A DNA stretch of 63,522 nt, the filler included, from Hyphochytrium catenoides (taxonomy: Eukaryota > Protista > Hyphochytriomycota): NCBI GenBank assembly GCA_900088475.1. It is 15 parts of 15 records of this genome, joined end to end, with 100 filler letters (N's around TTAATTAATTAA, not from the genome) between each part and the next. Parts side by side here need not be neighbours in the genome. Positions count along the whole stretch, not along the records: positions 51,854 to 52,897 come from FLMG01001250.1; 14 more parts are not named here. One strand, 5' to 3'. Of the stretch, positions 9,898-52,897 are shown piece by piece. A model generated the notes under the pieces. That model made no database searches, was not told where the DNA came from, and saw nothing but the letters and a program-made list of their open reading frames with translations. Position 1 is the first letter of the stretch. Each line of letters starts with the position of its first letter. The position numbers and the translations under genes are program-made.

Positions 9898-12800
9898 ATG
9901 ATTTACTACGACTCGGACGCGTTCTTCCGCGTCCTTTTACGAATCCGAGGGACCATTCTCTCAGGCCGCGCCGTCCTCCGATCTCTCTTCATGGCGTTTC
10001 TAGCTTTTCTCTTGGCCTATCTCCACTCTGTCTCGCCCATCGTCCACAACACAGCGTCCAATCACGGATTAGTGCAGACAATGTTCAACGCTAACACTTT
10101 CTTAGGCTTACTGATGACCTTCAGACTTAACTCTGCGTACACGCAGTGGAGAGCGGGCATGACCTCTCTCGATAACCTGACGCGGACCTTGAGAGACTTT
10201 CTCTCCATTGCCAGCTCTTGTCTCGTGGCAGGACATGGGGGAGAAGGAGAGGAGCTTGAGAGTAAGAGGAGAAAGGTAGGAGAGAGACACACTGAGAGAA
10301 AGAGGGAGAGAGAGCAAAAAGAAGAGAGAAAAAACAGAGAGAGAGAGAGAGTAAAAAATGGGAGGAAGAGAGGGGAAGAGTGGAGAAAGAAAGAGAGTCC
10401 GTTGAAGGGAGAGAATGTATTAGAATTAAGGGAGTGAGACAGAGAAAGAGAAAAGAAGAAAGAGAGGCAGAGCGTGACTGATTGATATAAACGGAGCGAG
10501 AGACGCAGAGGAGGGCCATGGTAGAGATGAAGCAACGTAGGAGAGAGAAGAGGTCGCAGGAGCCTAATGTTTAGCTCTTTCAATCCTTCCGTCCTGTTGC
10601 TTCTGTCTCCCCTTTGTCTCATGATCTCTTGTCTCTCCCCTTGCGCACCTCTTTCTGTCGGCGCCTCTCTCCCTGCGGTGCCTCTCTCTGCCCTTTTCTT
10701 CCTCTCTCTGTCTCTCTTTCTCTCTTTCTGCCTCTCTCTGTCTCTCTCTCTGTCTCTCTCTCTGTCTCTCTCTGTCTCTCTCTCTCTCTCTCTCCCTCTC
10801 TCTCTGTTACCAGGTGCAGACATTTATCCTCGAGCTCCGGAGGCTTTTGATCGCCTTTCTCATCGTTGTCTTCCAGCTTCTGAGGCAAGAAGAATATTCT
10901 TTAGAGAGAATCGCCAAAGCGGCGAGACTGACACACGAGGAAGTGCAGCTTCTCATCACCACAGGAGCCGAAGAAGATTACCGGCGAGGCCAGCGAGGAA
11001 GAGATGGGTAAGGAGAGAAAACAGGAAGTCTCTCTCTCTCTCTCTCTCTCTTTCTTTCTCTGTCTCTCTCTCTCTCTCACCATCTCTCTCTCTCTCACCC
11101 TCTCTCTCTGTCACACTCACTGGCCCTCTTCCTCTTTGTCTTTCTCCATGCTGTTTCTGCTTCTCTGCGTGAATAGATTATGGCCGTCCTTCGATCTCCG
11201 CAGCTTCTTTCGCCATCGTCCATCTCCTTTCTCCCCCTCTTTTTCTCTCTCTCTCTTTCTTCTTTCTCCTCATTCAACTTGCCCTCTCTTCTCTGTAGGC
11301 TGTCTGCCTAACATCTTTGTCGCTTCCTATTGGCTTGCTCCTCATTCCGGCATCACTCTTTCTTAATTATCTTCCTCTCTCTCTCTTCTTTTGACTCTCT
11401 CTTCCGCACTCCTCTCTCTCTTGCTCTTTTACTCTCTCTTCTCACGCTCGCCCCTACTCACCTTTTATTCTCTCTCTCTCGCTGTCACTCTTTCTTTCTC
11501 GCCACATCTCTCTCCCTCTTTCTCTCCCTCTCTCTCTTTTCCCCCAGCAAGCTCCGTCGCATGCACTCAAGAGAGAGAGACAAGCGTCTCCTTGCGCACG
11601 TTCCTCCTCGTCTGCGCTACACCGCCATTCTCTGTTGGCTCAGAGATTTTGTAGAAAGTGCGCACCGAAGTGGACTTCTGTCTCAGCCTCAAGCTCAAGC
11701 CTTGCACCAGAACCTATCGGCTCTCAGTCAGGAAGCGCAAACTCTGCACCGAAGTGCGCACGTTCCAATTCCATTCAACTATTCTCATTATACGAAGCTG
11801 GTGAGAGAGATGCGGGGCGGTCTCTTCTCTTCATCCGGGGCTTCTACTCTTTTTCTCTCTCTTTCTCCTTCGCAGTGCCCCCCTTTCTCTCTTGTTCCTT
11901 CTCTCTCCATGAGGTTTCCGCTGTCTTCTCTCTCACATGGTCTCTCTTCCGCATCCTTTTGCTCTTATCCTGCTCTCCTCTCTCTTTGAAGACTTGCTGA
12001 CTACTTTCACTCTCTTATGTCTCCCTTCTCTCTCTCTTTCTCTGTCTCTGTCTCTCTCTCTCCTCCCTTCTCTCCTTGTCTGTTTGTCTAATCTTTCTCA
12101 TTTCTCTCTCGTTTTCGAGCACTCACCTTCCCTTTCATCTCTCTCCTTTCAGGTGATCACGATATTTATCGCTCTGTACACTTTCAGTCTTGTGGAAGGC
12201 TCAGGGCTCATCTTCACTCCTTTCTGGGTCTTCCTCTGGTCCTTTGTACTCCTTGGCGCGGATGACATTGCGAATGAGATAGAGGTACGTCAGAGAGAGA
12301 CACAGAGGGAGAGAGAGAGAGAGGAGGAGAGAGAGGAAGAACAGAGAAGTGTCTTCTATCACCTTGTCCATCCTTTCTCTCTCTCTTTGTCCCACTCCGT
12401 ATCTTTGTAGTCTCTTTGTCACCATTTCACTCGTTCTTTTGGCTCTCAACTTGCTATGCTCTCTCTCGCTCTGTCTCCCCCTGTCTCGCTCTCCATCTCT
12501 CTCTCTCTCCGTGTCTCTCTTTTCACACACTCACATTCACCCATTGCAGTTATTTTCCTATTTTTCCCGCATTGCATAGCTCCCTCTGTTTTTCGAGATT
12601 TCCTCTGGTTCCTTGAGTTTTCTTGCTTATACAAAGCCTTCTCTCTTTCTCTCGCCCTTGCCTTCTTTCTCCCTCTTTTGCGACCCCGCCCTCAATCTTT
12701 CTCTCTCTTTCCTTTTGCCTCTCACTCTAATTTGTCTTCTCCTTCACACAATTTCTCTCTCACTCTCCTCTCTCTCTCTCTCTNNNNNNTGGAGCTTCGA

Positions 12801-21029: not shown

Positions 21030-24000
21030 TCAAGGTGCCAACATACAGCTGGGTGCCAGTAGAGGTGCCGGCCCTAGATGCCAGTTCAGGTACCACCCTA
21101 GAAGCCAGCTTCAGTCTGCCATCTAGGTGCCAGTTAGCAGAACCTGAATTCCAGCCTTAGGAGCCGCCTGCGTACTAGCTCTGTAAAGTACGTAATGATG
21201 CGGGTCACGGGTAACCCTAAGCACCCTAGCTTCTAGCTACCAGAGGCGTCCGATGAGGAAGGAACCTAGTAGTTTTCAGCTGAGTGCCTGCTTCGGGAAT
21301 TGCCTTTATGCAGGTGCCGCCTAGATACCAGCTCTGCGGCGCAGTTTTGATGCGAGGAGACATAGGTGCCACGCTAGTAGCTTCCATAATAGGGGCCGGG
21401 GCCAACCTAGAAACCACCTAGAAAGCACCAACCCGGCGTCATAAACCTCATGTGCCAGGCTAGGTGCCCGTCTTTGTGCAGTTCTTGATCCCAGCACCCA
21501 GCAGACTTGTTGCAAGCCTGGAAGTGGCAGCGTACGTGCCCGCATGGGTGCCAACGTAGATACTACCTTGCATGAGTAACATTGGTATCAGTCTAGGGCC
21601 AACGTTAGAAGTCACACATTTACATTACTTTAGGTCATTAAACCCGACGCTGAGAGCCTACGTGCCAGTTGTCACCCTGAACGCGCGCGCATTTTTTAGC
21701 TTATGGTGCCAGCTTACATTTTAGCCTTCGTTGCCGCCCTAAGGACACGGATAAGGAGGTCCGAGGTACGCGTAGGTACCCGCCGAAAGGTGCTATTCCT
21801 GGTGGGGCCATTTGAGGTCTCCACCTTAGGTGTAAACATATTGCGAGCCCTGCTGCCAGCCTAGATGATGATATTCCTTTTCACCTAGTTAGGTGGAAGC
21901 CTAGTAGGTGCCAGCCTGAGTTGCCATCAAAGTCGTCAGGATAAGATATGACCTGCTAGTCTTTGTGCCAGTCTACTTGCCAGGATGCAAGCCTTATTTG
22001 CCTGGCTAAACACCATCTAGAAATATTACCGCATTCCTATAGACATCCACGCCCTCCTCTATATATTATCGCCCTCCTCCTCCGTGGCGCAACCCTAGGT
22101 GGGTAGACGTGATTGCCAGTTTAGTCCATTCGGCTGCAAACTGCTAGTAGCCTAGATGCCACCAATTAGCCTTTACCCGCCTCAGAAGCCGACAACGGCG
22201 TCCGCCTAAAGCTTGATAACCTAGCCTCAATCCTAGGAGCCCTTCTAGCGACGGCCAGCTTCATGCCAGCCTTGGGGCCAGGTTTACGAGCCGGGCTATT
22301 AATCCTATGTGCACCACAGGTACCACTTTCATGGCCAACCTAAAGTGCCACCTCCGTAGGCCACGACCTTAGTGGGTCCCGGCCCTATAAGAAGCGCAAC
22401 CCACGACAAGAAAGGCTTCGTCGAGTCCGTTAGTCCTGTTCTTAGCTTAGCTGGTCAGACCCCGGTGGAGGCAAAAGCCAGAAGGAGACATCGCGGAAAC
22501 TAGTCAAATGCGACTCTTCCTTCAGAGAGAGTGTTTTAGCCAGCAGGTAAATAGAGAAACCTAAAACAGCAAGGGCAATGTATCTTAGAAAATAAAGAGA
22601 GAAGAAAGAAGGCATAAGGGGCGCAGAGAAAGAATAGGTCGTAAGACTACTCGAGGACAGCACAGACAAAAGAGAAGAGGAAAAGGAGTCCTTCACTGCA
22701 AGTGCCGGGACTATTCGCCCCGCGCTTGGCTAGAGTTGAAGGCTGCCTTTCAGTCTTGAGTGCTGTGCCCGATACAGCTGCCAGTTGACTCTGATCTTAT
22801 GGCCAAGTATGCACTAGAGATTGAACGAAACGACGGCTAGCAAGTAGAACACCCAGATGAACAAGGTGCTAGCTGTTCTAATAAACTCTGTATAACCTCC
22901 TCTACAAGCGTAAATACCAGCCTGCTGTGTGCTCGGCGTTAGCCAGACTAGGTGCGAGGTTCAATAGCAACCGGAGAGTAGCAACCTAGGTGCCGTAGGT
23001 TGGAATTCTATCTGTCAGGGGAGGTACTATCTTCAGGTGCCATACCTACTAGCCGCCATGTTAGGTTGCTAGGGTTAGGTATAGTTGCCCTAGTTGTTGG
23101 TGCCAGCCTGGTTGCGGGGTAGGCGTCAACCCACAGGGGGACCATCCTAGGTGCCAGCCTTTGATGCCATCTCCTGGGCTGGGTAAACTATGGAGGTACT
23201 GCTAGCCCACGGCGCCAGGTTAGGTGCAGACTCTTACGTGCTGGCCTAGGGTGCCATAGGTCTCCTTAGCGCCAGTCATGGTGGCCAGCGAAGGTGCAGC
23301 CTAGGTTACAGCGTAGATACCAGCCTACGACGTAAGAGCCTAGGTGGCAGCCATAACGTGCCAGCAGCTTCGAGTTGTCAGCCTTGGATGGGAAGACGCC
23401 ATCGTAGGTGTCAAGCTAGGTACGCCTTGGAGTTGCTTTTGATGCCAGCCTTAGTAAGTGTCATCCTAGCTAGCAGCATATGTCTCAGTCCCGATATCAG
23501 TGTAAATCGGTACCAGCCTAGGAGGCCGCTTAGGTGCATGGTTTGTGCCAGCCGTAGTTGACCACTTATATACCACCCCAAGGTGGTGCCCAGCAGCTTA
23601 GATCCCAGGCAGACAATCAAATGCAGCTTAACTGGTCTTTTTGGTGTCTGCCTTGGTGCCAGGATAGGTGGCCGTCTAGGTAAGTGTATGTACCCATCTA
23701 TTATTCTTACGGCCGGCTTTTGGACCAACGTAATAGGTACCAGCATTATTGGTGGCCTGCTGATGTAGTTATAATGGGGATCTGGTGATCCTCGTTTTTT
23801 TAGAGTCAATTTGCCTCGGTGTCGGCCCAGGTGCCACCCTTAAGACCACACTTAGTTGCTGGCGTGCTTAGGTCATACACCCTAACGCTAAGCGGCATGT
23901 AGCAGCTTGAAAGAGGCCAGCCCTACGCGAGCACCTAGGGGTTGACATCAAGGGTAAGAACCAAGTGACCTCCGAAGCCGGCACCGAGTACATCAAGCGC

Positions 24001-24480
24001 AGTCGCTACTACCTAGGCTGCTGGTACCCAAGCCTGGCACGTAGTAGGCTGACACTAAGCCTGGCACTTGGCAAACACACGTAGGTTAGCACCAGCGCAG
24101 GCTCTACTGCCTAGATGGCAGTTACACTGACAACTAAAGCTTGTAAGGAGTATGGCACGTAGGTTTGCACCACGCACCCACGTAGCACTGGTACCTGTCA
24201 GCTAGTTATAGCAAACGTTCGTAGGTTCCAGCAAAGTTTGTTACCAGCTTAGTGGATAATTTAGTTTATTCTCCCTAAAAGTCACCGTAGGTGTCAGTCT
24301 CATGTCGGTCTAGTTACCGCGGTAGCTTGGTCCCAGGCTAGCCATCATTGGTGATTGACCATAGTCATTAAGTAGCGCCGGCCTGGCTGTCAGCCTAGAT
24401 GATGCCAGCCTCAATCTGGTTTCCGGTATAGGTGCCGGATCGGTTCCAGGCTTAGGCCATCCTACTTCTACATACCAGCA
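21030..24480. repeat. Highly degenerate subtelomeric minisatellite, consensus approximately CTAGGTGCCAGC (12 bp)
   Basis: Recurrent (CT)AGGTGCCAG(CC) variants at e.g. ~21050-21135, 21312, 21364, 21460, 21905, 23099, 23147, 23506, 23715 and 24430. No credible ORF. Confidence 0.65.
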
Positions 24481-25957
24481 TTGATGATGGACCGTAACCT
24501 TAGGCAGGACGAACCTGGATGGTCTGATAGATGAGGCATCAGCTCTCAGTGCCGCATCCAGAAGCGAGATGAGGTGGTTAACCCTTAAGCTAAGGTCAGT
24601 GGCGGGTTAGAGGATAGTCCAAAAAAACATTTAATAGTCGTTCTTCCCTGGGCGAAGGAAAAGCCACAAGAGTGACAGGCTAGGTGCTTCCGGTGCTTTT
24701 GGGACGAGAGCCTCCTTGGCATGCACAGAAAGAAGAAGGGACTCTTATCTAGAGCTTGAATACAGGACACCTTGTTGCGTAGAGATGCTGTGTTCCCTGC
24801 TCTTCTACCTGCATGTTGGACCAAAAGGCCGAACGGCCGCCCGTTCCCCAGTAGAATAACCACGTCCTCCCCGCATGCAAGTGTGCTTTCACTGCTGGCC
24901 TTTAGGCTTTCGAGTTGCCAGGTAATGGTCACCTGCTGCCACCACTACGTCATGAAGGAGGAGACAGAAGATAACATTCGCCAGGAGTCAATCCATCAGC
25001 AACAGCAGTGGTCACGCAATGAATAGACATCCGGAACCTCCTCGCAAGCTTTCTCAACGTTCAAACCGATATGCGCCATTCAGTGATGATTCGGCTTCTC
25101 CTCATGAAAAGCATCACTCTGCTTTTCTTTAGGGCGTTCTAAGGTAACTTGAACTTTCCAAGCGACAGAAAGAGCGCGATTCCTGACGCCTAATAATAAT
25201 AAAACTACCGCTTTGTCCTCTGCATTCTCTTTTCTAAAAATCACTTTTCTTCTTGTCTTTGAAAGAAGAATGTCCTTTGATGAACAAACCAGGCCGTTAG
25301 CAGTCTAAGAGGCCGTTTCAAGTTCTTGTTTGTTGTCATTTATTAGGTGGAGCATCCTGTCCGGGATCAATCTGTAGAAATATGACGCTCTATAATCCTG
25401 ATGTCACCCTGCCCAGCTTGCCGTCGCCTCCTCGAGTGCCTTGCCTATGACGAAAGCCAGAAGAAGTACCGGACGAAGAGGAGCTACATTCGCCTTCCCA
25501 TGATGGCTGCTATTGCTCTTCTGAAGAAGGAGGAGAAGAAAGTGGGAAGAGGTTGGTGAGCATCAGGCTGTGTAAGGATTGAATGGACATGTCAGAAGAT
25601 GAAGATCTAAGTGAATGAGGCTACTACCGGAGATCCACCGATGTCGTAGACATCTATCTCTATTGTTGTTTATCCTCTGTCGCTAGTGAAGATCTAACGG
25701 AGGACACCTCCTGGTGCTGGTGGAATCACTCTACTACCTACTAGTCTCCTTACGTGAAGCTTGACCCTTTCGATGAGCCGTGAGAAGACCCTGTGGCTGC
25801 CCATATCAAGTGGGAGACATGCGTAGACGAGAAGAGTCACCCAAACCGTGAGTCCGAGACTCGAGGAGATGGAAGACAGCTTCAACCCACGGATTACTAG
25901 TAGGACAGTGCGTGGTAATGTACCAATGACTTGATGTTAGTACCAGAAGCCTCCACC

Positions 25958-28900
25958 ATGGCAGGAAGAGACGACGAGAATAGTGTGAGAGCGTCCACGG
26001 CTCCATCGCCTGTGGATGCGACGTGGCAACAGTCTCGACGACGTTCCTCAGTTACCTCTGCGGCAGCTGCAAGCAAGTCCAAAACATCTGCCAAGGAGTT
26101 CATTACGTCCAGTTCTGGCGGTATTCCAGAGTACAACGCCCTTCTGGACAAGCACCTCTGTAAGTTCATCTGCTAACTCATCGGTCAGGAAGAGGGACAT
26201 CAGAAGCGTTGGTGACCTCCACTAATCTCTCCTACTCCTCCGTACAATCATTTGCCCCTTCCTCCGCTCTAATTAACGTCACGACAAACGGCAAACAACA
26301 GCTGCAAGAGTAAAGCATAAGCTCAAGGATGAAGCTGTCGTCAATCAATTACAAGCGACCAGATGCATTGCAGTGATCAAGGAACAGGATATGAACGTGA
26401 TAGCGGTTCTTCATGACCAGCCTGGTAGTTCACGCGCAACAGCATTGAATTTCGAGAAAGTGAGTGTCAATCTGTCCTCCCTCGACCTGGCACCTCTTCT
26501 TTGTTATCTTTTGCTGCCCATTAGTATCGGATGTTAACAAATCACCTTGTAGGGAAAGAACGGTGGAGCCCCTATTCCTCTGAATTTGGCGAGTCCCTGC
26601 AATAATCCATCGGTCACGTCCCGGCCAGTATCCTCTTCCAATCGCCAGAGGCATTTCTCAGAAGACATTAAGAGCGAGCACCCGGTGACGGTGCAGAGAC
26701 TGAAGAAGAATAGAGAGATCATCAGCGGAACAGGAACAACAACCGAGAGGGAGCCCAAATATGTGGAGGATTATCCTATGCAACCAGCATGGAGGAGAAG
26801 TCTGGCCAGGTCGCAGACAGAGGCGGTCATGGGTAGATCAAAAGAACATCCACAGAAGGTGGGATATCCCTCGCCTTCGAACGACGATGAGCATCAGATT
26901 GTGTCTAGGGTATCTTATGGATTGAAGACGAAGATTCTATCTTCTGTGGCACCAGCAGGACGCGCTAGTTCCAGTGGTGAGCAACGGAAGAGTCATCCTT
27001 CCCCACGGTCAGCCTCCACTAGCCTGGGATCGATATCTCCTCCGCGACCTAGCGGTATCACATGCCAAGAGATTGCGGCGTTGCTGGATAAGGAGAGTGA
27101 TTACCGGACGAAAATTGAGAAGCTCGCACGTGACCTAAGGAGGCTGGACCGCACCAAGCTTGAGGTTGAAAAGTAAGTAGCGAGGAGGTTTATGAGGAAG
27201 GATCTTCTTCCATGATGCCAATCTTTAACCCCTTCCATGGCAACAACTTACAGTCAAATTAATGAAATGAGACGAAACGGTGTCGGACCACGCGTAGTAG
27301 TAGAGACGGACGAGAGTGCGCGGAAGAAAATAACGGCGTTGGAAAGACAAAAGAATAAGTGCCAAGCGGACTATATGAAAGCCTTAGCAAGGCAGAAGCG
27401 AAGGAAAGCTGCGGTCGACGAAGCGAGACATGAAACGGTAGGCAAATGCTCTTGAACAACGAGTAGTATGCACTGTGCAACAACACTCGCTCTTCTTCCT
27501 CACTGACGCGTCGGATGCTCATGGTGCATACTACCGTGGTAGATTATGGTCAAGAAGGAGCGAGTTGCGCTCATGGAGGACCTAAGGAAACTGACGATCG
27601 AAATCCACGAGAATAGCCAGGTGGTCAAATCACATCGGCAGAACTACAACGCGGTGCTTGCAACGCTGAGAGCTACTGAAGCGGAAGCTGAGAGAGATTT
27701 AGTGGCGCGCGTTCAGCAGGTGGTTGCCTCAAGCAAAAGAAACTACTCAGACCGCTGACCGTCGTTATGCTCACTTTGCAGATGCCAGAGATTGAGGCGT
27801 CGAAATCTCTTGACATTGCTGGGGCGATAAGCGAGATCAACGAAAGAGTTAAAGCACGAACAGAAGCCATACTTGAGAAACATATGGAGGTGAGTGCGTA
27901 ATACTAGAAGAAGCAGATATGAGTAGGGAAAATGGGTGCAGCGACTTCCTGGGCACGTTTGACAACAATTGGAACTCTGTAGGCCAAAGGGAAAATGACG
28001 CGAGGACTTTTCCACAACATTATAGGCAAGCACAAGCTCCAGGTTGAGGAAGAGAAGTTAGAGAATTTCCAGGTACGGCAAGTTATGTTATGCTTTGGCT
28101 CACGTTCCGTCCTCGGTGCGCTTGTTCTCTACTGAATCTCTGACCTTCACTACTGTCTATGATATGGACAGAGGATCTTCAACGAGATCAAGGTGGCGTG
28201 TAATCGGGATGACATCACGCTGGAAGAGTTTGCCGAAGAGTTTGTTACGACTGAGCGCAGGGTAACCAAATGCTTCAAAGTCGCATTCACGACGTATCAC
28301 TGCTTGGCTTTCTTACTTTCTTATTTCATTGATGGATGTATGGGTGGTGAGGCCTCCCCCCATAAGGTTACACTGACACCGCCCCCAGTGGGAGTCCTGC
28401 ACCTTAGGCCTTACTATTATAGAATTGATGGTTTGTTTTCCTTGTCATTGGTTCGCGCTGACACGATTCCTTGAAGTTGATCAGCTTGCACGGTCAAGTC
28501 CTGGCGACAGAGCAAGAGAAGAGGGCGCTGCAAGAGGACGTACGCCTAAAAGAGGTACCTAACGGCTCTCTTCTTGTCCTTAAAGCGCTGTCGCCACTAA
28601 CCAGTGTTCTTTGACAAAGGATGAGCTTCGGCAGCGGCTGAGGGACGCACAACAACAGAATATGGACAAGAATGTGGCCTCGAACGAGGTGGCAAAGGCG
28701 ACTCAGGACCAGCTTTCCGAGGCTTCACGACAGCTTGAGGAGTAAGTCTACCCTTTATGAACGTGTTCTTCATCGCCGTTCTCCCAGCAAAAATGGACAC
28801 GACCGCGCAGTGTCTGAAATGAGCTTTACGGGCCTTGAATGTTTCCGTCGATGCTCACTGAACCTTCCCCGACTGCGGGTATTGGCGATCAACCAAATAA

Positions 28901-51853: not shown

Positions 51854-52897
51854 CACGAAGATGAGACTCACTTCCTCATGAACGGTCCCTTTTTCTGTCT
51901 CCTTCAGACTTGCCCAGTCTACTGACTTCAAGTGCATATCAGTTGCCCGTTTCTTCAAATCTTCCACAAGGGCAATCAAAGGAATGATGACAACCGTTAC
52001 CAGCAAATGTTTCTCCTCTACTTTAGCCGGGATGAAGTACACCATTGTCTTCCCTCCACCAGCTGGGAGGACGCATAGCAAGTCTGACTTCCTTCTCAAT
52101 GCAGCGATGATGCTTTGACACTGCTGCTCACTATTAAAGGAAGCATCGCTTTTTCCAGTGAGCTTGCGCAATTCAGAAAGAGCAATCACACTCAAACGAT
52201 CCGCCTCTGGAGACATTAACATTTCTTCATCACCAATGTGGACTTGCGAAGTCGATGGAAGAGCTGGATCCACGTAGTTGTTGTTCGTCGCTGTCATGAT
52301 ATCTCTTACAGTATTCTTCAGTTCGGCCATACCCTTGAGGAGAGCGACAAGGAACTCGGAGAGATCTGCTTCCGGCCACAAGGACGGAGAATATCCATTT
52401 CCGCTTGACCCAACATCGTGCCGTCGCTCCAAACGAGGCACCGATAGCTTCTGGAAACCTAAGAAGGCCCACCAAAGAGCGGAGCATAGATGATACTCAG
52501 CCAAGTCCTCTGTCGAAAGCGTCCTCATGTCCCTTGCGCTCTTCCCATATCTGGCGGTTTCCGTCGCCTTAGAGTGCCCAGCCTGCTCAGAAAAAGGAAG
52601 CCTCTTAACTTTTGGAACTCTTGGATAAATATGCGCCTTGAGGATAGCCGCGGTGAGATGGCGGTAGTCGCTGAGCCCAAGGGCGGTCTTGGAAGAATCC
52701 TCAAACTCCCGCTTAAAGGCTGCAGCTACGCTTTCCGGAGTTGCTAATCCTGGGCCGTCCAGCAGCAAATAGGTGTTATAGAGCTTGCAGACGTTGCCAT
52801 CGTTATCGGCCCACAGAACCTCAGCAAACACAATTTCCGCGGATCTTACTAGAGCCAGATATGTGACTACCATCTGCGCTAAGCTTGGAGGAACAAA
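51854..52897 (-). CDS. Telomere-linked-helicase-type protein fragment: tyrosine-recombinase-like tail fused to a RecQ-family SF2 helicase
   Basis: One frame is open across the whole contig, with no introns. LSDYRHLTAAI, EQAGHSKATETARYG and SALWWAFLG are followed by FNSEQQ (Q motif), VLPAGGGKT (Walker A) and VTVVIIPLIALVEDL (motif Ia). Confidence 0.85.

Follow-up and report, generated by a model that had tools for sequence, protein, structure and literature searches.

The window is a 63,522-nucleotide stretch of joined contigs attributed to Hyphochytrium catenoides, and all coordinates given here count along it. Positions 51854-52897 carry, on the minus strand (translation of the reverse complement), 348 codons without a stop. 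The frame is open at both ends and continues into the artificial linker on either side (ORF list), which makes the piece a gene fragment; ORFs in the remaining frames are all ≤85 aa. With three stops among 64 codons, 348 stop-free codons would arise by chance with a probability of ~(61/64)^348, or ~6e-8, and this value, with the 1,208 representative proteins that match the encoded protein at E≤1e-3, rules out a chance ORF. Positions 51854-52897 contain no microsatellite, the sole repeat being one of 19 nt in two copies, at chance level. The first-pass annotation had described a single stop-free, microsatellite-free frame across the whole contig, with recombinase-like motifs, a linker and helicase motifs in succession, and each of these elements was recovered at the position given there.

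All features of the fragment lie on the minus strand. Amino acids 1-150 (52448-52897), truncated by the contig edge, correspond to the C-terminal half of a catalytic domain with a predicted tyrosine recombinase (YR) fold, the “TLH domain” of telomere-linked helicases (TLH). The Arg-II box, LSDYRH (aa 75-80; 52658-52675), contains the putative second catalytic arginine, R79, and has S76 at the position of the classical HxxR histidine. It is followed by a His-III box, QAGHS (aa 105-109; 52571-52585), the counterpart of LGHS in Xer/Int proteins, with H108 at 52574-52576, and by RYG (aa 116-118; 52544-52552), which contains Y117, the putative nucleophilic tyrosine (52547-52549), nine residues past H108. 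After the tyrosine, WWAFLG (aa 142-147; 52457-52474) lies in a conserved, family-specific C-terminal helix that includes W142. The Arg-I and β-hairpin Lys positions of this gene are upstream of the contig edge and thus outside the piece. A variable linker (aa 151-225; 52223-52447), partly disordered and with a single long helix at approximately aa 176-204, has no conserved alignment columns among the relatives. The N-terminal part of a RecQ-type SF2 helicase core (aa 226-348; 51854-52222) then extends to a point before the DEAH box and contains the Q motif FNSEQQ (aa 254-259; 52121-52138), the Walker A motif LPAGGGKT (aa 277-284; 52046-52069), whose K283 is invariant in the alignment of relatives, and motif Ia, VVIIPLIAL (aa 302-310; 51968-51994).

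The downstream part of the protein is a RecQ-type helicase, with Q motif, Walker A and motif Ia all of the RecQ type. Pfam DEAD matches at 2.5e-7, past Pfam's cutoff, and among NCBIfam models TIGR01389 (recQ) matches aa 254-315 at 4.5e-10 and recQ_fam matches at 2.1e-8. The best PDB sequence matches are RecQ, RECQL5 and BLM (phmmer), and the top five structural matches of a model of the fragment itself are RECQL5 (Z 9.9), RECQ1 (9.8), BLM (9.2), DrRecQ (9.1) and WRN (8.9). Relatives have Pfam matches to both DEAD and Helicase_C; in the gene of the fragment, the DEAH box and the later helicase parts fall beyond the contig end. RQC, zinc-binding and HRDC modules have no Pfam match in the relatives, and subtelomeric RecQ helicases in the literature likewise lack all three.

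Full-length relatives are 1,500-1,750 aa long, and the fragment aligns at approximately residues 700-1000. Pfam comparison of six of them gave DEAD and Helicase_C every time and OrsD for four, whereas ~500 aa upstream of the helicase had no match, giving a layout of OrsD/C2H2, ~500 aa and RecQ core. Published TLH proteins consist of paired C2H2 motifs, a conserved ~250-aa “TLH domain” directly before the helicase and a RecQ core. TLH genes, known since the late 1990s from many fungi and one choanoflagellate, lie at chromosome ends next to telomeres, are reported in 14-19 subtelomeric copies, and have been proposed to function in telomere maintenance. They differ in presence or absence between strains and subspecies and are often pseudogenised. 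Papers from 2020-2024 describe the “TLH domain” as specific and without assigned function, or find no domain apart from the helicase, and the literature searched contains no paper tying it to tyrosine recombinases. The relatives share the tripartite layout of published TLH proteins (paired C2H2/OrsD, a domain before the helicase, and a RecQ core lacking both RQC and HRDC) and, like them, form a multicopy, strain-variable family. This architecture suggests that the fragment is an internal part of an OrsD/C2H2-“TLH domain”-RecQ gene of the published TLH family, in agreement with the kinship to fungal TLH that had been noted in the initial annotation.

Even the closest relative, out of 1.84 billion representatives, shares no more than 36% identity with the fragment. 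Named relatives are all fungal, chiefly Agaricomycetes, and clusters are Ascomycota, Basidiomycota or Mucoromycota; the proteins, from Agaricomycetes and metagenomes, are annotated merely as “hypothetical protein” or “DNA 3'-5' helicase”. An exact-protein look-up and a word-indexed protein search with the fragment returned no match, and an initial metagenome scan returned no relative. Scan matches obtained with the Walker A pattern were generic, mainly bacterial RecQ helicases covering at most query aa 199-348, and were discarded. A phage or bacterial origin finds no support; two relatives annotated as proteins of bacterial MAGs show the fungal OrsD architecture. The fungal affiliations, together with 151-nt pieces 97-100% identical to the fragment in one rhizosphere and one soil metagenome, raise the possibility that the contig derives from a co-cultured or contaminating soil fungus and not from the labelled organism, in which case it would carry no information on a flagellated host; this reading concerns the origin of the gene and not its function. 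Such an origin is quite improbable, as two samples of organism A, collected in 2011 and 2017, both yielded the sequence at high depth, and TLH genes have been reported from a choanoflagellate too. Furthermore, the low identity of the best relative and the empty word-indexed search indicate that the sequence is not from a commonly sequenced fungus.

Sequence-level searches found no recombinase in the upstream domain. The Pfam YR families (Phage_integrase PF00589, DUF3435 PF11917 and NDC10_II PF16787) had no match in the fragment at E≤10 and none in any of 65 relatives at E≤1, DUF3435 included. NCBIfam returned no YR family for the fragment, searches of PDB sequences with the fragment (phmmer) and with the family profile found no YR, and hhalign of the family profile against XerD, Cre and lambda Int gave a probability of <1%. 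The hhalign alignment nonetheless paired GQPxRxTE with ATGLRVSE and YxK with GKG, and was treated as uninformative rather than contrary. Weak leads from a feature-based cluster search, at 0.77, pointed to telomere-resolvase clusters and to a DUF3435 cluster.

A phmmer search with aa 1-240 recovered the upstream module, from query aa 1 to ~155, in 121 of 150 relatives. The fragment holds only the last ~150 aa of the domain, and the fold was tested on a homologous segment of one relative, P0004:411-906, which aligns to aa 1-181 at E 6e-18 and for which the AF2 model had a pLDDT of 89 and a pTM of 0.85. Nearly all top Foldseek matches of this model are YRs. With VIA-align, the best match is XerA (4a8e), with Z 12.7 and an rmsd of 2.8 Å over 172 residues; the alignments of Cre and XerH extend across both domains (229-246 residues). 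An unbiased structural search of 48,161 chains placed only members of the YR/topoisomerase IB/protelomerase superfamily in its top 19 rows. The best matches are Xer, Cre and phage integrases (XerA, XerH, XerD, Cre, IntI, Tn1549 Int and Brujita Int; Z 9-12.7). Type IB topoisomerases and the protelomerases TelA and ResT/TelK score Z 7-9.7, with the bacterial, Leishmania and variola topoisomerases at 9.7, 8.5 and 8.3, and Ndc10 scores Z 6.4-6.7. On the basis of this model, the domain upstream of RecQ in the family is predicted to be a two-domain YR fold of Xer/Cre type, with an N-terminal core-binding-like helical domain. The model of the fragment itself has confident helices at aa 4-28, 35-42, 54-69 and 75-93 and a further helix at 129-146; Y117 is in a low-confidence loop (aa 111-120), and pLDDT is <50 at 156-173 and 207-220, in the linker.

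Conservation was counted in alignments of 65-85 relatives. R79 (Arg-II) and Y117 are kept in all 85 aligned relatives, and H108 is His in 81 and Arg in the remaining four (95-98% His across alignments). The H-to-Y spacing of nine residues equals that of XerD, in LGHSDLSTTQIY. Arg-II, His and Tyr are intact in the fragment, in the order and with the spacing of the YR superfamily, which upholds the claim of an intact catalytic tail. The two residues beyond the contig edge were traced in full-length relatives, where Arg-I in GQPxRxTE (R-x2-E) is 98% conserved and the Lys in YxK, which the P0004 model places between strands 308-315 and 326-331, is 93% conserved. Family-specific positions are also well kept (W142 in 77/85 relatives and S139 in 72/85). 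The fragment departs from the consensus at two conserved positions, S19 and A279, where a high-depth copy carries P and T. Residue-by-residue correspondence with the active site of YRs is drawn from the order of the motifs and from secondary structure.

A further reading sees the domain as a DNA-binding module devoid of catalysis, comparable to Ndc10 or the domesticated DUF3504 proteins, which would serve only to target the helicase. The low confidence of the Tyr loop in the models and the presence of Ndc10 among the structural matches would be compatible with this. However, active recombinases score far above Ndc10, and conservation of Arg-I, Lys, Arg-II, His and Tyr lies at 93-100% in sequences whose identity per column is otherwise only ~21%. 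Inert YR derivatives normally lose catalytic residues, and loss of activity in this family seems highly improbable. The integrase reading of the upstream domain, as first proposed from sequence motifs, is supported both by near-invariant putative active-site residues and by the modelled fold, with its matches to XerA, Cre and XerH.

Of the YR motif layout, Arg-II, His and Tyr are present with XerD-like spacing, but the His-II of the classical HxxR hexad is absent from the fragment (S76) and present in only 6 of 85 relatives, the column being variable (R22, S21, N13, Q10 and H6). The conserved set is therefore a pentad, as in type IB topoisomerases, whose catalytic residues are R-K-R-H-Y without the HxxR His. 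This raises a less likely but serious alternative: a host-serving enzyme of chromosome ends with a YR fold, acting as a swivel or nickase of topoisomerase IB-like or resolvase-like type paired with a RecQ motor, with copies arising by ordinary subtelomeric duplication. By analogy with RecQ-Top3 dissolution and reverse gyrase, such an enzyme might process recombination intermediates or repair or extend eroded telomeres. Besides the pentad, this explanation draws on topoisomerase IB scores little below those of recombinases, on the weak feature-based leads to telomere resolvases, and on the telomere-adjacent location and proposed maintenance role of the family in the literature. Against it, Xer/Cre-type recombinases fit better (Z 10-12.7), and their match takes in both domains, the core-binding-like N-terminal one among them. 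Furthermore, patchy distribution between strains and subspecies and frequent pseudogenisation are unlike an essential host function. Two genome-anchored relatives also sit well inside their contigs, ~99 kb (Neoantrodia serialis) and ~198 kb (Leucocoprinus leucothites) away from the closer end, a location that differs from that of published TLH genes.

Copies of the gene and their surroundings bear on both the recombinase and the host-enzyme readings. A second copy of the fragment differs by 17 nt (1.6%), with seven synonymous and 10 non-synonymous changes, and is stop-free. The contigs that hold it have word depths of 324 and 4,475, whereas assembly depth in those runs is otherwise ~1x, although depth does not equal copy number. 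Depth differs 14-fold between samples, which would be compatible with extrachromosomal amplification. In run X1, a 5,868-nt contig continues beyond the piece by 1,038 nt on the upstream and 3,786 nt on the downstream side in the direction of the gene. The element appears to be present in many copies in the source organism. Ordinary recombination can by itself expand a subtelomeric family, with no need for a self-encoded enzyme. For the distant relative P0046, an identical protein is found on four metagenome contigs that have four unrelated left flanks and share one nucleotide-sharp left boundary. On its right side, the shared block grades into a paralogous ORF of 85% identity and looks like gene conversion or segmental duplication, not like an element end; this resemblance to a conversion tract suits the host-enzyme explanation. 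No terminal direct or inverted repeats were found around the P0046, Neoantrodia and Leucocoprinus copies, and the relatives' copies examined showed no target-site duplications, element termini, empty sites or circular junctions. Telomere-repeat arrays were absent from the 14 relatives' contigs scanned, the sole match being a 28-nt (CA)n run in L005. The suggestion of a self-mobilising element is plausible on circumstantial signs: high depth, the 1.6%-diverged copy, the flanks and boundary of P0046, the chromosome-internal copies, and the copy numbers and strain differences in the literature are in keeping with it.

The explanation slightly favored is that the fragment belongs to a TLH-type gene in which a YR domain fused to RecQ is an active recombinase, forming the self-serving core of a repeated element. 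The YR domain would cleave and rejoin DNA through a 3'-phosphotyrosyl link at Y117, and the fused RecQ motor would unwind or branch-migrate the recombination substrate. The gene could then spread among chromosome sites, often ends, by YR-mediated site-specific recombination.

Comparison with characterized systems indicates what is shared and what is distinct. The two-domain fold, Arg-I in G-x-R-x-x-E, Lys after a β hairpin, Arg-II, His and Tyr are common to the family and to Xer, Cre and phage integrases. Unlike those enzymes, the family has no HxxR His, carries large insertions and, past the Tyr, one additional helix with a conserved Trp, and is fused to a helicase with a zinc-finger domain in front, and sequence similarity between the two groups is below detection. 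Cryptons and Starship “captains” (DUF3435) are fungal YR-fold enzymes for which DNA movement without cut-and-paste-type terminal inverted repeats has been proposed or demonstrated, whereas neither DUF3435 nor another YR family in Pfam matches any of 65 members of the present family at E≤1. To our knowledge, no Crypton or Starship recombinase is a helicase fusion. Type IB topoisomerases and protelomerases share the superfamily fold and the R-K-R-H-Y pentad, and the protelomerases TelA and ResT/TelK act at chromosome ends, which recalls the location of TLH genes. Both groups score below recombinases, however, and the family lacks N-terminal or cap domains of the topoisomerase type. Helitron Rep-Hel, the relaxase-helicases TraI/TrwC and reverse gyrase also combine a DNA-cleaving and -rejoining domain with an SF1 or SF2 helicase in one polypeptide. 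These are analogies of design only, without homology, as their catalytic folds are HUH or topoisomerase IA and not YR.

The novelty of this analysis, relative to published work on TLH, is the recognition of the “TLH domain” as a predicted YR fold with a conserved active site, which gives a multicopy family of chromosome ends a possible means of self-movement. More broadly, and only tentatively, the TLH genes of fungi, choanoflagellates and this organism may be single-gene engines of an unrecognised class of eukaryotic mobile elements rather than host helicases. They would combine a diverged YR, RecQ and a zinc-finger targeting domain and act by site-specific insertion or exchange, preferably at chromosome ends. 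The multicopy, strain-variable and subtelomeric nature of TLH genes would follow from such insertion or exchange. The TLH puzzle thereby becomes testable: the conserved Tyr may cleave DNA, the genes may spread site-specifically from one chromosome end to another, and a recombinase or topoisomerase may be coupled to the helicase. The family would add to the eukaryotic YR systems (DIRS/Ngaro, Cryptons, Starships and Flp) a helicase-fused branch that Pfam-based annotation has missed entirely. For this genome, it means that the contig is probably a piece of a high-copy repeat and not of an ordinary host gene.

A single reading frame crosses the whole piece at 51854-52897. Translation of its reverse complement (minus strand) gives 348 codons without a stop, for which the chance is ~6e-8 (arithmetic), and the ORF listing holds no second frame of >85 aa. 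The GC content is 46-54% and no microsatellites are present, in keeping with the stop-free, microsatellite-free contig described by the first-pass annotation. The frame enters artificial linker on either side, so its product is truncated at both termini. The motifs that had been proposed all lie where they had been placed on the minus strand of the translated frame: LSDYRH, the Arg-II box with R79 (52675-52658); QAGHS with H108 (52585-52571); Y117, nine residues past H108 (52549-52547); the RecQ Q motif (52138-52121); Walker A, LPAGGGKT (52069-52046); and motif Ia (51994-51968). WWAFLG occupies 52474-52457 in the same frame.

Residues ~226-348 form the N-terminal stretch of a RecQ-type SF2 helicase. 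They match Pfam DEAD above its cutoff (2.5e-7) as well as NCBIfam TIGR01389 recQ (4.5e-10) and recQ_fam (2.1e-8), and RecQ, RECQL5 and BLM head the sequence matches in the PDB. An AlphaFold model of the 348 residues (pLDDT 80.6), searched against 48,161 representative chains, returned RECQL5, RECQ1, BLM, Deinococcus radiodurans RecQ and WRN as its five best structural matches (Z 8.9-9.9).

Residues 1-240 have no sequence match in Pfam, NCBIfam or PDB. When 1.84 billion representatives were searched exhaustively with HMMER, 1,208 relatives emerged at E<=1e-3, the closest only 36% identical to the window protein; those bearing names are Agaricomycete "hypothetical proteins". At full length, relatives have 1,500-1,750 aa and the query aligns near their residues 700-1000. 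A conserved module (window residues 1 to ~155) is present in 121 of the 150 best matches. Pfam analysis of six relatives (1,189-1,743 aa) placed DEAD and Helicase_C domains in every one; four also begin with OrsD (PF12013), a paired C2H2-like domain, and the ~500 aa upstream of the helicase have no match. Two relatives with the OrsD-YR-RecQ architecture of fungi (YR, tyrosine recombinase), P0006 and P0161, were deposited as "MAG: helicase-related protein" under the labels of a bacterium and a Gloeomargaritales cyanobacterium, probably through mis-binning of eukaryotic contigs with bacterial MAGs. In a Fomitopsis-like relative (L007:569-7345) the gene appears as six successive same-strand ORFs, of which the second contains OrsD and the fifth the helicase; the split is probably due to introns or frameshifts, so that listed protein lengths understate full-length genes. 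The metagenome contig from ENA that bears relative P0010 carries Illumina adapter sequence at both ends (L014:1-60 and 11960-12025) and was thus assembled from untrimmed reads.

The fold of the upstream region was predicted for residues 411-906 of the relative P0004, which match window residues 1-181 at E 6e-18, using a 65-sequence family alignment. The model is confident (pLDDT 89, pTM 0.85). Its Foldseek matches in the PDB are almost wholly tyrosine recombinases, led by Cre (E 1.4e-2, probability 0.98), with none at E<=1e-3. VIA-align re-alignment gave Z 12.7 for archaeal XerA (rmsd 2.8 Å, 172 residues) and Z ~10.5-11.3 for XerH and Cre over 229-246 residues, spanning the N-terminal helical and catalytic domains. 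In a search independent of Foldseek, each of the 13 chains scoring Z>=8, and every entry in the first 19 rows, belongs to a single superfamily: Xer, Brujita Int, Cre, IntI, Tn1549 Int, topoisomerase IB, SSV1 Int, lambda Int, TelA and SroF, an integrase-fold repressor. Lower scores were obtained for Flp (Z 7.1) and Ndc10 (Z 6.4-6.7), with unrelated helical bundles from Z 7.2 down. Comparison of P0004's upstream domain with Cre and Xer by structure prediction returned a YR fold, one that no sequence profile detects. In the model, Arg-I lies at a helix start, the Lys between strands 308-315 and 326-331, Arg-II within helix 402-416, and the Tyr in a low-confidence loop, a predicted placement that is as expected for the YR family.

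Alignments of 40-85 relatives, which took in ~330 aa upstream of the point where the piece begins, show the same residues conserved against a background identity of ~21% per column. Arg-I stands in "GQPxRxTE" (R 98%, E 98%), followed a few residues on by a conserved Asn and Arg; the Lys of "YxK" is 93% conserved; and R79, H108, Y117 and W142 are found in 85, 81, 85 and 77 of 85 relatives, respectively. By sequence, their order and context are those of a tyrosine-recombinase active site (Arg-I, beta-hairpin Lys, Arg-II, His-III, Tyr), and the nine-residue His-to-Tyr spacing is identical to that of XerD; we infer equivalence at the level of individual residues. That the fold is retained as an inert DNA-binding module is very improbable given this conservation. 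Unlike classical YRs, which have the HxxR His, the window protein has S76 at a position that varies across the family, and without that His the pentad is of the type IB topoisomerase kind. Type IB topoisomerases use such a pentad. The absence of His-II, together with good structural scores for topoisomerase IB, lends some weight to the main rival explanation, in which the host employs this chemistry at its chromosome ends, the domain being a topoisomerase-IB-like or resolvase-like partner of the helicase; we regard it as possible but distinctly the lesser prospect, as Xer and Cre match better, over two domains, and the family is patchily distributed.

Telomere-linked helicase (TLH) genes have been described from Magnaporthe, Schizosaccharomyces pombe, Ustilago, Metarhizium, Fusarium, Botrytis, Agaricus and the choanoflagellate Monosiga. 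Published accounts include presence or absence among strains and counts of 14-19 copies in a genome. Their published layout (two N-terminal C2H2 motifs, a ~250-aa conserved domain directly before the helicase, and a RecQ core without RQC and HRDC) matches that of the present family, and the probable identity of the two families rests on this architecture. A 2024 preprint termed the upstream region the "TLH domain", of undetermined function; other work states that no domain besides the helicase core can be recognised. Full-text searches, covering few subscription journals, found no paper linking TLH, tlh1/2, RecQ or subtelomere genes to a tyrosine recombinase, integrase, Crypton or DUF3435; such a link may have been reported elsewhere. 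The gene family itself is already known; the apparent novelty lies in recognising that its signature domain has a tyrosine-recombinase fold. Structure and conservation support the proposal of an integrase-type domain before a RecQ helicase, as in fungal TLHs. Searched by structure, the ESM Atlas yields this fold in fungal clusters as well, where it accompanies OrsD or helicase domains or stands by itself (TM 0.55-0.84).

Distant relatives offer some view of copies and their flanks. Four contigs, each from a different metagenome, encode the protein P0046 with the same sequence, within a 6.8-kb block that is 99.97-100% identical (L001:8362-15146, and from position 1502 of L002, 45 of L003 and 95 of L004). 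Its left boundary, at the start of CCTATGTATATGCGATCC, is exactly the same nucleotide on all four, and the four left flanks are unrelated, one being a Gypsy element and one (L004) CA-rich irregular repeats. At the right edge, identity falls from 100% to ~85% within a minus-strand ORF, a pattern that by sequence resembles the limit of a conversion or duplication more than an element's terminus. The 48 nt at the left end have a 77%-identical counterpart 150 bp upstream of the block (L001:8211-8258), and 98 nt of the L004 flank recur in L002, 871 bp further from the block. The search for element ends yielded a sharp common left boundary for P0046, but neither terminal repeats nor target duplications around the copies of P0046, Neoantrodia serialis or Leucocoprinus leucothites. 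No telomere-repeat array occurs in any relative's contig fetched, the only similar sequence being a 28-nt (CA)n run in L005. The nearest contig end is ~99 kb away from the Neoantrodia copy and ~198 kb away from the Leucocoprinus copy, so family members are not restricted to chromosome ends. A tandem array of at least 13 units of 173-174 bp (L005:5052-7918) lies 2-5 kb upstream of the Neoantrodia member. The gene range of the Leucocoprinus member, P0034, includes a long 27-nt (9-codon) tandem array (L018:13936-14802), with a perfect 1,316-nt inverted repeat 7 kb downstream (23361-24676 and 24960-26275).

A second copy, differing from the window copy at 17 positions, was found in sequencing runs labelled with the source organism from two samples (2011 and 2017). 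Its contigs measure 5,868 nt at word depth 324 and, in the second sample, 1,310 nt at word depth 4,475, a 14-fold difference in a quantity that is not equivalent to copy number. Contig letters in these runs nearly equal read letters, indicating an overall coverage of ~1x, and the two contigs account for ~2% and ~6% of reads (arithmetic). A massive copy number, an amplified or extrachromosomal form, or library enrichment could each account for such depth; the simplest supposition is that the sequence is highly multiplied or is amplified outside the chromosomes. An origin of the contig in an associated fungus is unlikely, since the sequence recurs at high depth in two samples and no close relative was found, both of which argue against a casual contaminant. 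Seven of the 17 differences are synonymous and 10 are mostly conservative non-synonymous changes, with no stops. At codon 19 (52841-52843) the window copy has Ser where 74 of 85 relatives have Pro, and at codon 279 (52063), in Walker A, Ala where at least 90% have Thr; as the high-depth copy carries the consensus residue at both, the window copy may be a slightly degenerate member of a repeat family. Pieces of 151 nt, 97-100% identical to window 51935-52275 and 52585-52891, occur on single contigs in a rhizosphere and a soil metagenome, indicating that the bearer or a very close relative lives in soil.

The window encodes the junction of a YR-fold domain and a RecQ motor, and in the family, which is large, patchy and multi-copy, that domain has a conserved active site. 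The first-pass proposal of a self-mobilising YR-helicase element is upheld as to this fusion, and its mobility step is reasonable rather than demonstrated. We marginally favor the reading that a repeated element encodes this protein as its self-serving enzyme, which would act by YR strand exchange with help from its helicase and zinc finger. The Tyr would attack DNA to form a 3'-phosphotyrosyl intermediate, the fused helicase would prepare or branch-migrate the substrate, the zinc-finger domain may add targeting, and strand exchange would insert or swap the element between sites, often subtelomeric.
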